A stretch of 64,000 nucleotides of DNA, taken from assembly GCA_964035545.1 (NCBI GenBank), contig OZ037767.1, positions 14,884,998 through 14,948,997 on the forward strand. The letters are read 5' to 3'. The stretch's first letter is position 1. Each line of letters opens with the position of its first letter. Shown in pieces: positions 38,901 to 44,900 of the stretch. The notes beneath the pieces are model-generated. The model was not told where the DNA came from. It worked only from the letters and a program-made list of their open reading frames with translations, and ran no database searches. Source of the stretch: Bugula neritina (lineage: Eukaryota; Animalia; Bryozoa). A program made the position numbers and the translations under genes.

Positions 38901-41900
38901 TTTCTCAATGTTTTGTTGTTGATACCTTATTTTATAATTTTCGAATTTAAATCATATCTGGGGTAAATATTGTAAGAGCTGTAAATGGATAATTTTATCA
39001 GAATGGATTGTATGGACATTGGATATATAGAATGGTAATATGTTGATATTATAATTATATTGAGTTACATGAAAAAACCAATTGTTAAATGTAATTTAAT
39101 GAACTTCCATATCATATTTGAGACCAGGGTTTTTTGTTTTTATTGGCTGCAGTGTAATGTGTTGTAAAAATAAAAATAATATAAATAAAATTATACATTA
39201 TGCATAGCAGTTTATAAATACAAGCTATATAGTGTTATCGTTTCAAGTTTATATCTGCAACTGTTTCACCATGTCTAATGAAATAAATTATTTGTATTTC
39301 TCCTTATTCTGGACATCTGCTGTTCCATTGTTTTGACATCTTCAGCATAGATTCTTATTGCGCTCCCAACAGTACCGCACCATGTCCGTGGCCTACAAGA
39401 GTTCTCCATTTATCAATACTTTGTTGCATTTGCTTTAAAAATACATGAATAACGTAAACCTGCATTTCAAAATAGTAGAATTTGCATCGTAATTGATTAG
39501 TGCTATCTATGTCAGCTTTGAAGGTATATTAGTCTAACTTTAATTTTTTAAAAGTTCTTAGTAATAAAATACATAAAATGTATACTATATAGTCTACAGA
39601 TTTATAAGAAGCAATGTTTCTTTAGATTTTGAAGAATTTAATGAATATGACTGGCGTATTGATTTAGAATAGAAAATCTACAAGAAGTATTAGTTATGTC
39701 TAAAACTAATTCAGCATAGTTGATTATTTACCAAAGGAACTGGGAACTGTTATACTTTGTGCGGCTGTGCTACTGGTGTATGGGGTAGTAGTTGTAGAAC
39801 TGGTGCTTGGTGTGTAGGTTACTTCTTCTGGTTTGACTTTGTGGTGACCGACATCAGTTGTTGAATAGTCTGTAGTAGTGGTGGTGTAGTCTGTAGTAGT
39901 AGTTGTATAGTCTGTAGTAGTAGTTGTATAGTCTGTGGTAGTAGTTGTATAGTCTGTAGTCGTTGTGTAGTCTGTAGTAGTAGTAGAGCTGTATGGAGTG
40001 GTGGTAGTAGTATATTCCGATGGCGTGTATGTCCTAAAATCAAGCAAATAAATATTTTCACCAACATAACTTAATGAGGTAAACAATCTTCTATAAATTC
40101 ATCAACTGTTGGACATGTGACTAAAAGTCTTAGCCAAGTTGCAATATTGTAAACACTACAAATTGTGAAGATATTTGCCCGTATCTTATCAACTTTTCTA
40201 GTTAAAATTGCTCTTTAAATATTTTTTCCTACTCTGCAGGATCCTTTAAAATCTTCTCTATAATTCTTGCAAATATTTCAAGTGTGGGTATATGGTATAT
40301 GTAAGATATTGGTCCTAGGACCTAGAGGCTGGGCCCTCTAGTATGCAGGACAATGATGGTAGACAGAAATAAATATTGTTACCGATTTATGAATTCTAGC
40401 TACATAGTGTGATGATTACTTACACTTCCTGTACTTTTGGGTGTTTTCGATGGGCTTTCTTGATTTTGATGGTGCTGATTTTTCTTTTGGGTGCTGCTCT
40501 CTTTTGTCTTGATATCAGGACGGTCCCATCAGCATATCCTACAGTATGGTACAGCATCTAATCAACTAAACTTCCAATACTGATATCTGCCAGCATTATT
40601 AGCTGTTCTCACTTTAGATGTTTGTCGCTAGTCAAAATAGTTTTAGAACTCTTACCCAGACCAGGTGGGAAAGGTGATGCCGTGGTACGTGCTACTGAGG
40701 TAGTGTACGGCGTTGTAGTAGATGTTGAGCTGGTAGTCGATATGGTCGGAGTGTATGTTATATCTTCTGGGTCTGCTTTCTTCTGGTGAGCTGAGTCCGT
40801 TGTTGAATAAGTTGATGTAGTGGAACTGGAGTATGGTGTACTCGTGCTAGTATAGTCACTTGTAGTCGACTCATATGGCGATGTAGTAGATGTGTAGTCA
40901 CTGGTTGTACTGTAACCTGTAGTGGTTGTGTGAGGTTCAGTTTCTGGAGTGTACGTTATGTCGTTCATTTTGTGTTCAGCCGATTCTGTTGTAGGGTACT
41001 CTGTAGTTGTTGTGTAGTCTGTAGTTGTTGGTGTGTATGTCCTAAAACATATATAAATACTCAATCAGTGTGCAGCTCCACTTGCACAATAAAAGGAAGC
41101 TTAGAAATTAGTTAGTGTCTCATTTTGTTGGGGGAACTACTCACATTGGTGCTGGTGTTGTTTTTGGTGTAATTTTTGGTTTCCCGTGGGTCAGGTATTG
41201 TTTGCCTATCCTCCGCATGGCCGATCTCAGCCAGTTAGGCGATCTCTTTCTTCTGCTTAGCAATGTGGCTTCCTGCTTGTGTCCTGAAAGTGTATTACAT
41301 GCAAATTTGAAGGTAATGTGTACAGACATTTTCCATTTGGTAAGCAAATTTTTTACTTCTATGCTACCCAACTCCGTGGTTGAAGCCCTTCCTGCTGGGC
41401 AGTTTTAGGGTGTAAGAATTTATGTTCCATCCGAAGTCAAGTATTTTTTTGCATATATTTATTATGGCAGTTTGTTGACTTTTAAACTATGCTTGACCAA
41501 TTTTGGTCTGCTTACCTAAGCTTCGTTTTTCTCGTAACAAATGAAGAGTGATCCCATGTTGAAATGGGTTGAATACTCTAACATCCCTTTGTGTTAGAGA
41601 AGGTTTAGTGGTAGTGGTGGTAGTTCTAGAGGTGGTTCTGGTGGTGGTAGTAGTGGTTCCATTTGTAGTAGTACCAGCCAAGTGTCTTCCTTTTGCTAAA
41701 ATATAGGGGAGAGTTGCGTGATCAACATATTAATGTAATATCTTTCAAAAATAAGTACTACCATGACCCAATGACCAACATTTTTGTAGAAGTTTATGGA
41801 ACAGCTTTAAATTGCGGCACCTAATTTTTTACCCTGTTGTCTCTTTTGTCTTTCTTCCTTTCTCTTTTGGCGCTCTTCTTTCGTCAACTTCTGTCTGTTT

Positions 41901-44900
41901 GTCTTCACTACTTCTGACGCCGCAGTTTTTGAGCTGGGAGTTGCTTCTGGTATGTGAGGTACCACGTTCCTGGAAACCGGAGGCTCCTCTGTTGGGGAAA
42001 ATACAAGATTCAGTGTTACATGCTGCTGCTGCCTACTTCGGCACACTTGAAACATCATAAAGTTCACATGTTTTTTGGAAGCTTACTATGGTAGAAACTT
42101 TAAGCCATAGTAACAGTATTTTCATGCTAATACTAGTCTTTATGTTAGAATGCAGCTCACCTCCTATTTTGTAGAGCTCGACTCCTTTCGTGTTATCTAT
42201 AACTTTTTTCATTGCTGAGGAAAACGCCTTGTAGAAGGCTCTGTTGTTGTGTGCAAATTTCTGAACCTTTGAATTAAAGTATGATCAGATTTTATAACAT
42301 AGTTGTTTGGTGACATAACTATATGCATATGAGTGTGTTTCTTTGTTCTCATATTAACCCAATTTTTTTCCTATGATGTTTAGATATTGCTTTCAATTGC
42401 AACCAGGATATTTGGGTGGTATCAAAAAGCAAATTTACTTCCATTTTTGTAACAAAATTTTAGTTGGATATAAAACTCACAAATACTCTTTCCTCGGCAG
42501 CACCACAAACTTCTTTCCCATCGACTGCTTCAAACAGATTGCATTCGGCCTCTCCTTTACTCTTGGGTTTCACTGCAATCTTATGCGCCAAGGCAGCGTC
42601 ATCTCCCAGCATCATCACTGGTTTGTCATTGGTTGCCCAAAACATGCTACAACATGTTCACCTCATGAACTAAAGTCTGTTGGATTAAGTAGTTGAAGAC
42701 ACCTCAAAAGTTGTTGATTTTATTATTCATCAAAAGTGAGCTATTTGAACTTACTGTCCTGCTGCGTTCTTTTCCTGATGATATTCCAGACTAGAGTTGA
42801 GCAGGTTCTTGTAATATTGGTTGTTGAATGCGTGGTTGTCATGAGTCCACTGGCCGTCAAATGCGGAGTTCTTTTTCGTCATTTTACCAATTGTATGAGC
42901 TCCTGTTAATACAGAGTGGTAATTTTATTATAGTTGATCAAAGAATCCTCTTAGTATTCAACAGAAGCAATGTGCTATGTTGTATATAATCACGTTAGTT
43001 ATTGGTCATGGGTAGTTCTAATAAATCTTAATGAATAAAGTTACAATAACCAAGTCATAAAATTTTATAACTTTTGTAAAAATCGAAGATTGAAGAAGCT
43101 GGTCACCATATATTTGGAAACCGTACAGGTATTTGTTCTCTGAATTTTGGTTAAATCAAGATAGATTATACTATACCAAAAGTTTAAATTTTAAGTAGTA
43201 TATCTTTCCAAAATGTGGTTGCCACTTTTAATAGAATTTTTCATTCATAAATAATGAAAAAATCGCCTCCCAAAATAGATTGTGCCAGTAAAATTGGGTC
43301 GGCGCTCACCTAAAATAGCTGTGTGCTCCTCCACAGTCAAGTTGAACTCTGCACCAAGTTTCGGAGCGTTGTGATGGTGAGGGCCCGGGAAGAAAAAGCT
43401 TTTCCTATTGGGTGGCGACTCCCTGTTGGGGCAATCCACGCGACCAATTAGGAAGGGAAATTTGGGAAAACAATTCCCTTCTTCACATCCTATTAAAATT
43501 AGAACAGTGCTACTGATTTAATGCATTTAATGCATTTGTGTGTATCAAAAAAATTCAATAAATAAAATTGCCAAAGACATCGATTGAAATACAAAAGTCA
43601 ACTGTTGTTTTTAAAGTCACAGAGTGATAATAACTATTTCAAGTTATGGTGTAATGAGTAAAGTTAACTAACTAGTAAGACATCCATCTTACAGGAAGTA
43701 AAAGTACCTTCTTGAAACGTTGTCGCATAGTCTATGGCCAGAACTCCGGCGATAGCAACGAGATCCGAAAATGACATCTTTTCCTTTATCGGTGTCCGCC
43801 CCAACTTTCCTGAACTCCACAAATCAAATAGTGGATCGAAAAATTTCTTTATTCCTGAAAATACAGATAATTTCAGACTCCTTTGTCACTGGTACTCTGT
43901 CTATTAGTACAAATCGGAGAGTAACTTAATATCATCATATACTTAATATGCCTAGTAATTAAATTTTATTTCAATTTAAATTGATAATTAGGTATTAATT
44001 ACAATTGCATCTATAAATGTGGCCTTGTATCTCTAACCTGCATTGCCACCATTACCAAAGTCGATACATCCATCACAACCACCCCAACAGTCGTGAAAAG
44101 TCATTCTGAGGAATCCGGCATTGAATGTAGTGATTCCATCTTCTTTGTTGTCATCTATTAGTTGTCTGTTATGACAATAGAATTGGCACTTGATGAAATA
44201 TGTGACAATATACAAGACTATGATTGCTAACGAAACTTAACATTCTGCTGTGAATCTATATAATAATTATACATTGGAAAATTTAGGAATTTAATTTGAA
44301 TAAAATCCAATTATTTTAAATGGCTTATCTTTTTAACTCATTGTTTACAGAGGTAATAGCTCTTGCTGTAATTTACACTATAAATATTATCTAAAATCTA
44401 TATAAATGCCATTTATAGTCTACATAATATATATCTAATATCTATACAATACCTCACTTGCTGCTTTATATTTCTAAAATCTCTGTTAGTGAAAACTGGA
44501 TACACAGGCACGCTGCTTTCTGGCACAAAGTCAGCATCTTCTTGCTGACTCTGTGTTGTCTGGCAGCATATTGACACTAGAGTGATGATGAGTAGGGAAG
44601 ACTTTACTTGCATCTGTAATATACACATATATTATACACATATGTAGCATATTATCTGTAATATACAGACATATAGGATACGATGTATGTATATAATATA
44701 TACTCAACAAATTAGCATGGTAACAAATATATTTCTAGGTTGTTATATAAAGAGAGAACCAAATGGTATCAATATTATTTTATGCTTTTCATACAGCGTT
44801 ATATGCATGCAACTCAAGTTTAGCTATTGCAGTATTCTTGAATGAAATTCCTTTGAGTCTTTTTTATTTGAACTTCTTGTTCGTAGAACAGTGTTGTGGA

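Follow-up and report, generated by a model that had tools for sequence, protein, structure and literature searches.

This report describes a gene of the bryozoan Bugula neritina that encodes a predicted secreted haem peroxidase followed by a repetitive tail rich in Thr, Ser, and Tyr. The gene, here called the polyprotein gene, lies on the minus strand at 44613-39355 of a 64,000-nucleotide stretch of DNA (GenBank assembly GCA_964035545.1, contig OZ037767.1, positions 14,884,998 to 14,948,997). We refer to this stretch as the window; it is part of contig 3 of an AT-rich 216-Mb genome. An earlier sequence-only reading of the window had proposed a single precursor that carries an enzyme together with its own Tyr-bearing cross-linking substrates. 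We discuss the structure of the gene, its orthologs and paralogs, the signals for processing in the tail, and the alternative explanations for its architecture.

Structure of the polyprotein gene

The gene model was rebuilt exon by exon on the window. It consists of 14 exons, with GT-AG borders throughout, whose in-phase join is 2346 nt or 781 codons; the 13 canonical introns measure 103-407 nt. The encoded parts follow in this order: putative signal peptide, peroxidase, charged exon, Thr-rich exon, 2 repeats of a linker plus a Thr/Ser/Tyr module, and a truncated linker with the stop codon. The features are as follows.

44453..44613, minus strand: exon 1, start codon and signal peptide (by eye)
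44038..44165, minus strand: exon 2, distal haem pocket with Arg, Phe, His, and a Cys-x4-Cys pair
43708..43854, minus strand: exon 3, peroxidase domain; 147 nt, with length and phase equal in the ortholog L019
43310..43489, minus strand: exon 4, peroxidase domain; the query by which orthologs were found
42755..42902, minus strand: exon 5, proximal His (GAHTIG) and GQWT, whose Trp is the equivalent of cytochrome c peroxidase Trp191
42481..42646, minus strand: exon 6, peroxidase domain
42161..42260, minus strand: exon 6b, peroxidase C-terminal helix; enters in phase 0 and leaves in phase 1; homologous exons in paralogs and orthologs
41833..41988, minus strand: exon 7, charged Lys/Arg/Glu exon, phase 1-1; opening motif PPxxRNVVP in 4 of 4 taxa
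41840..41872, minus strand: 2 RQKR motifs within a 21-bp tandem duplication of exon 7; not R-x-K-R in other taxa
41516..41695, minus strand: exon 8, a Thr-rich stretch, then a segment ending in R-E-K-R, plus SL; phase 1-1
41523..41534, minus strand: site 1, R-E-K-R (LLREKR/S); identical in X1, a relative of about 93% identity
41145..41283, minus strand: exon 9, linker 1, net charge +11
41243..41254, minus strand: site 2, R-R-K-R (LLSRRKR/S), in linker 1
40656..41041, minus strand: exon 10, module 1; 53% T+S, 12 Tyr, 3 TYTP, net charge -10, no Cys
40424..40538, minus strand: exon 11, linker 2, net charge +10
40498..40509, minus strand: site 3, R-Q-K-R (LISRQKR/A), in linker 2
39732..40033, minus strand: exon 12, module 2; 59% T+S, 11 Tyr, 2 TYTP, net charge -8; holds the TTTTTDY array
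39856-39984, minus strand: TTTTTDY array in exon 12; 21-bp unit, 6.3 copies
39355..39392, minus strand: exon 13, truncated linker; stop at the K position of R-x-K-R

The donor of exon 1 is uncertain: it is at 44453, or at 44458 with a different acceptor. Exon 6b is absent from the sequence-only reading, and its phase-1 exit exactly fits the acceptor at 41988 given there.

The earlier description of the tail holds. Phase-compatible exons follow the catalytic domain and encode alternating modules, with all described features in place. The exon pair 41283-40656 is duplicated as 40538-39732, as proposed; the 2 modules are 58% identical and retain TYTP and H.K..PE.[IV]TYTP. The TTTTTDY-type unit, counted there as 6, corresponds to the 21-bp array. 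Finally, the last exon had been taken for a truncated copy of the linker, and from its acceptor onward it aligns without gaps to both linker exons at their starts, with its TAA stop opposite the Lys codon of their R-x-K-R. A glycosylphosphatidylinositol anchor was considered for this C-terminus and rejected: the end GAVLLGAQ is too short.

The peroxidase domain

By its sequence, the enzyme is a haem peroxidase of the PF00141 type (peroxidase-catalase superfamily), predicted to be secreted and with catalytic motifs intact. Exon 2 contains the distal Arg-x-x-Phe/Trp-His catalytic motif of this superfamily, in the form of the class III-type motifs R..FHDC and GCDGC, and aligns to RMHFHDCFVRGCDG of plant peroxidase structures. 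Searched alone against PF00141, its 42 residues give an E value of 0.003, which falls short of the whole-protein cut-off, as expected of a fragment. Exon 5 (AHTIGK...GQWT) contains the proximal His ligand region of the superfamily; it matches residues 174-216 of cytochrome c peroxidase with an E value of 2e-7, and also ascorbate peroxidase. This mix of a class III-like distal and a class I-like proximal side fits the secreted metazoan clade of the superfamily (PMC4232752). The N-terminus of exon 1 resembles a typical signal peptide when judged by eye. The family of peroxidasin and the animal haem peroxidases (PF03098, peroxidase-cyclooxygenase superfamily) is not matched; all matches of the enzyme are of the PF00141 type.

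Orthologs in metagenome contigs

A profile built from exon 4 and 2 fragment matches retrieved 11 metagenome contigs from 3 further taxa. Their exon-4 sequences and that of the window are all mutually different. Identity to exon 4 of the window and GC content are as follows.

L018/L019: 75% identical, GC 42%
L020: 68% identical, GC 43%
L014/L015: 75% identical, GC 39-40%

The order of parts is common to all 3 taxa: peroxidase exons, the charged exon with PPxxRNVVP, an exon ending in F.HG.TL.L..R.KR, and repeats of a linker plus a TYTP module. In L019, exons 2-6 measure 128, 147, 180, 148, and 166 nt, the lengths found in the window, and all junction phases are equal. The L019 gene is a chain of more than 20 exons with canonical sites throughout; linker ends share the donor AAT/GTGAGT, and module starts share the acceptor TTTAG/GACATACAC. 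An ortholog of gene C, the paralogous peroxidase gene downstream in the window, lies 3' of the polyprotein gene in both L019 (10477-12818) and L020 (8523-9065). This conserved synteny supports orthology.

Two places in these orthologs deserve mention in their own right. In the fourth linker of the L018/L019 ortholog (L018 6174-6578; L019 6713-7117), the frame changes after ARSITTT; canonical sites permit an extra short intron there (donor 6863, acceptor 6927 or 6963), and otherwise a frameshift is present in both samples. At L019 1636-1776, exon 1 of the ortholog directly follows an acceptor-like TTTTAG, with no Met ahead of the hydrophobic core (KIVWLLAATLAIAAVS). Its start codon is probably in a small upstream exon.

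Evidence for enzyme and tail in one gene

Exon structure and conservation argue strongly that enzyme and tail belong to one gene, and we infer their transcription as one mRNA. The single precursor gene of the sequence-only reading gains support from 3 sides: conserved phases and exon sizes in a second species, a short junction intron (85-172 nt), and a tail that has neither a start codon nor a signal peptide of its own, yet looks secreted. In the window, the intron between exons 6b and 7 measures 172 nt, like the other introns, and the neighboring genes are 2-12 kb away. In L014 and L020, the tail begins about 60-150 nt from the last peroxidase exon. A similar arrangement is present in a paralog, gene A, where one uninterrupted frame runs from the C-terminal helix into a Thr12 tail.

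Variation within the tail has the pattern of coding sequence. When module 2 is compared with X1, 8 of the 13 listed differences are synonymous third-position changes. In exon 8, the last 22 codons, REKR included, differ from X1 by 1 synonymous change, and the Thr-rich part by 8 replacements. The listed haplotype indels sum to multiples of three in exon 12; other lengths occur in introns only.

The alternative is that 2 genes adjoin here: a peroxidase gene that ends after exon 6b, and a separate Thr/Tyr gene, possibly starting at a small intronic open reading frame (ORF) near 42124. A GTAAGC donor closes this ORF (42085-42124, minus strand), and an in-phase join to an alternative acceptor at 41986 would be possible. 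The gap between exon 6b and the ORF, however, is only 37 nt, too little for a poly(A) site plus a promoter, and the hydrophobic core of the ORF is short and broken by Lys. Furthermore, the ORF is missing from the orthologous intron of L018/L019, and the phase match with exon 6b is kept in L019 across the intron of 85 nt. We consider 2 separate genes very improbable.

Linkers and putative convertase sites

The sequence-only reading had listed 3 R-x-K-R sites in the tail. All 3 are present, but the total is 5, as exon 7 adds 2 RQKR motifs. It had also called for a search of orthologs with conserved furin sites, and here the result is clear: with the linkers of the 4 taxa aligned on the dibasic site, R-x-K-R occupies 13 of 14 positions and K-R all 14. 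Of all features in the tail, R-x-K-R is the best conserved among the 4 taxa. It is mostly followed by Ser or Ala and preceded by a conserved motif, aromatic-x-H-G-(T/Q)-(V/M)-L; between units, the rest of the linker reaches only 19-37% identity. In most units, another dibasic site lies 10-16 residues further on, after a short, often acidic spacer (S.[DE]...H.ISKR). When residues were shuffled with composition kept, R-x-[KR]-R arose in 9-14% of cases per basic exon, which gives a joint value of about 0.001 for the 3 linker exons.

The end of the gene is informative as well. In all 3 taxa with a complete 3' end (window, L019, and L020), a stop codon falls inside the truncated linker, at the site or immediately ahead of it. 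Such an end is expected of a polyprotein: all released units, the last included, would end in HG.VL, and the last needs no cut. The enzymes for such cuts are encoded in the genome, where P_proprotein (PF01483) scores above cut-off at 12 places in at least 6 loci, so that proprotein convertases are present. Taken from these sequences, processing of the precursor by convertases is likely. The RQKR pair of exon 7 is not conserved as such, so that the enzyme is less sure to be freed from the first tail segment than the units are to be freed from one another.

The same basic motifs permit another explanation, in which the protein stays intact: the Thr/Ser blocks would form a mucin-like stalk, and the basic blocks, R-x-K-R included, a polyanion-binding tether to the matrix or cell surface. 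The charge pattern is consistent with such a tether, for in a tail free of Cys, basic blocks (net charge +6 to +11) take turns with acidic modules (-10 and -8). So are 3 paralogs described below (genes A, C, and E), in which the peroxidase is followed by a low-complexity stalk or tail, with a polybasic end in C and E, and strict furin motifs are absent. The pattern of conservation is harder to reconcile with it: R-x-K-R is invariant at unit boundaries, whereas the basic character after it is not, and the L019 linkers are roughly neutral. Moreover, the truncated terminal linkers stop at the site position in 3 taxa, and in disordered secretory proteins, an exposed R-x-K-R with Ser or Ala after it is the canonical target of convertases. 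We regard an intact, tethered protein as improbable.

Thr/Ser/Tyr modules

The modules have the properties of mucin-like (Pro/Thr/Ser) domains: high T+S with Pro, no Cys, tandem repeats, and no fold family. Across taxa they hold 45-76% T+S, 4-12 Pro, and 0 Cys, and they are acidic. Pfam finds no domain in the tail exons, with only sub-threshold compositional matches (New_glue, DUF3439, and Methyltransf_4). In the Atlas, the look-alikes of module 1 score at most 0.82 and are mucin-like G glycoproteins of viruses; we set these aside as likeness of composition and not kinship. The extensin pattern of Ser-Hyp4 repeats with YXY or VYK is not found in the modules, whose repeats are Thr/Ser-rich with TYTP, DY, and PY. 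Elsewhere in the 216-Mb genome, the module does not recur.

Two features vary among taxa. The first is Tyr: the sequence-only reading had emphasized regularly spaced Tyr, and this spacing is seen in the window, but a high, regular Tyr content is not universal. Modules contain 7-11% Tyr in 3 taxa and 3-4% in L020. What persists is TYTP, which stands at the very start of every module and recurs at least once more, usually after [DE][IV], so that all modules in all taxa have at least 2. Since Tyr content varies by taxon, the conserved feature is TYTP and not a heptad-like Tyr spacing. The second is the number of units: 2 in the window, 5 in L019, and 4 in L020. The ratio of enzyme to unit is accordingly not fixed, and the fixed stoichiometry once proposed for the precursor fails across species. 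Within one species, units often differ very little, a sign of recent duplication or concerted evolution.

The units could be processed as proposed and still have nothing to do with the chemistry of the enzyme. The products would then be cationic antimicrobial or signaling peptides, or lubricating or protective mucins, and the peroxidase would simply be secreted alongside them, perhaps as a partner with antimicrobial or antioxidant action. Double dibasic sites, a short acidic spacer, and a basic, partly amphipathic peptide recall the precursors of prohormones and antimicrobial peptides, and the low Tyr content of L020 agrees with such a role. Yet the basic peptide and the acidic module would stay joined, as there is no cleavage site between them; the bulk of each unit is Thr/Ser/Tyr module; and its best-conserved parts are TYTP and HG.VL, not the basic peptide. 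On balance, products that act independently of the enzyme seem unlikely.

Paralogs and neighboring features

Three PF00141-type genes stand in tandem on the minus strand of the window: gene A, the polyprotein gene, and gene C. Their low-complexity tails are all different. Two further paralogs, D and E, lie elsewhere on contig 3.

~63251-56739, minus strand: gene A, paralogous secreted peroxidase; Thr-rich stretch near the N-terminus
~37422-35105, minus strand: gene C, paralogous secreted peroxidase; Pro-rich, then strongly basic tail
L004 4062-7659 (contig 3, ~10.94 Mb), minus strand: gene D, low-complexity N-terminal extension of APVTG repeats; stops right after the C-terminal helix
L010 1345-10465 (contig 3, ~801.8-811 kb), minus strand: gene E, peroxidase close to exon 2 of the polyprotein gene

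The last exon of gene A is open in a single frame across the C-terminal helix, the Thr12 run, and a brief hydrophobic terminus (APIVAGPVLHSG); the gene could continue past VLHS, where a GTATGT donor follows. An exon of gene D scores 24.4 bits against PF00141. Gene E has a mucin exon of 330 residues (PSTLSST) with a polyarginine end, NLLISRDRLNEFIANRRRLLRLRRRRSRQRRQRRRRSNFRN, and then a stop. A likeness of this tail to the linkers (LLISR) was seen by eye only and is not retained: BLASTP of the polyarginine tail against the 2 linkers gives no alignment. The spacer between the polyprotein gene and gene C contains a 22-bp tandem repeat at 38153-38228 (3.5 copies, 92% matches).

Paralogs A, C, and E resemble the polyprotein gene in enzyme family, putative signal peptide, and the presence of a low-complexity tail after the C-terminal helix. 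They differ from it in having one tail each, without repeated linker/module units, TYTP, or strict R-x-K-R.

A proposed mechanism

The explanation we favor, with moderate confidence, is that one gene encodes a secreted polyprotein that is processed by convertases and whose peroxidase cross-links its own Tyr glycopeptides. In this scheme, the precursor would enter the secretory pathway through its signal peptide, trailing a disordered tail built of exon modules with 1-1 phases. Each repeat unit would comprise a linker with the HG.VL motif and R-x-K-R, a short spacer, a basic peptide, and an acidic, Cys-free TYTP module, and the modules are predicted to be O-glycosylated. Furin-type convertases would cut after each R-x-K-R; in the window species, the products would be the enzyme and 2 Tyr-bearing glycopeptides, each ending in HG.VL. 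Enzyme and glycopeptides would be packed and released together. Outside the cell, peroxidase and H2O2 would couple Tyr residues, most plausibly those of TYTP, and so make the glycopeptides an insoluble matrix, for example a cuticle or an adhesive.

Enzymes of the peroxidase-catalase superfamily oxidize phenols. The step in which this peroxidase would couple the Tyr residues of the modules rests on analogy with other systems, and we put it forward tentatively, at somewhat less than an even chance. In plant walls, extensins are cross-linked through their Tyr motifs by class III peroxidases (PMC8160292). Among animals, PF00141 peroxidases are expressed in the adhesive basal-disc cells of Hydra, and peroxidases catalyze dityrosine formation in other bioadhesives (PMC5080974). 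The products may serve in a glue or cuticle.

Several observations weigh against this proposal. A single search of public runs found none with RNA of the locus. Two public METAGENOMIC RNA-Seq runs (labeled "symbiont metagenome") have contigs of about 93% identity over 39300-44286, and these cover introns as well as exons. As they run through introns, they are genomic DNA of a sibling lineage and carry no splice information. Exon 4, searched against all libraries, matches only 2 ORF fragments and no annotated full-length protein, and the contigs of both fragments end short of the tail. Word-index searches with exons 8, 9, and 10 found no match; such searches are limited by length and these queries are of low complexity, and the result has little weight. 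With respect to the units, their number varies from 2 to 5, and the low Tyr content of L020 modules implies that heavy Tyr loading is not essential. Lastly, paralogs C and E carry mucin plus polybasic tails without strict R-x-K-R, so basic patches may also act as matrix anchors.

The most far-reaching form of the proposal is a single "self-curing" gene in a lineage of marine animals, apparently bryozoans, whose convertase-processed precursor would unite a cross-linking enzyme with its own Tyr-bearing glycoprotein substrates. It would be to these animals what extensins and their peroxidases are to plants, with TYTP as cross-link sites and HG.VL as a conserved handle on every unit set free. In this full form we think it rather unlikely.

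Comparison with known systems

The architecture combines features of 3 known kinds: a secreted metazoan peroxidase of the plant type, a repeat polyprotein with the signature of convertase processing, and a Tyr glycoprotein of the sort that peroxidases cross-link. The nearest enzymes are those of the secreted metazoan "ascorbate-peroxidase-like" clade from sponges, Hydra, and copepods (PMC4232752), likewise PF00141-type animal haem peroxidases, with a signal peptide like the putative one of the bryozoan protein. They are described as enzyme-only proteins of about 300-370 residues, and no description gives them a convertase-fenced C-terminal repeat tail.

Extensin peroxidases (PMC8160292) belong to the same superfamily and act on rod-like, heavily O-glycosylated, Cys-free glycoproteins with short, periodic Tyr motifs, which end up as covalent cross-links. 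Extensins differ in that they are encoded by separate genes, carry Ser-Hyp4 with YXY or VYK, and undergo no convertase processing; for the bryozoan modules, cross-linking is a prediction. The likeness between the 2 systems is one of functional analogy.

Peroxidasin (PMC8533639) also joins a secreted haem peroxidase and matrix-interaction modules in one polypeptide, and it is cut by a convertase near its C-terminal part. It belongs, however, to a different and unrelated superfamily (peroxidase-cyclooxygenase); collagen IV, on which it acts, comes from a separate gene; and it has one site and no repeated units. Repeat polyproteins of the prohormone type share other features with the bryozoan gene: tandem units bounded by R-x-K-R or K-R, spacers between double sites, and a last unit free of a site. 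In contrast to these, the predicted products are mucin-like glycopeptides of about 150-190 residues, and the precursor opens with a complete enzyme.

In the literature searched, we found no description of a peroxidase combined with convertase-fenced Tyr modules, and nothing relevant on adhesive or cuticle peroxidases of bryozoans. There is a fair chance that the architecture is new in kind.

Implications

If the proposal holds, we know of no earlier precursor that carries a matrix-hardening enzyme and its repeated substrates in one polypeptide. It would provide a simple genetic route to the joint delivery of catalyst and monomer for the cuticle or underwater glue of a major fouling animal, and could serve as a compact blueprint for glycoprotein materials cured by peroxidase. 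Plant-type peroxidases, whose expansion in some animals is puzzling, would also gain a concrete function. Read cautiously, the polyprotein gene and its orthologs are still a conserved gene family, specific to one lineage, and its processing signature is clear.

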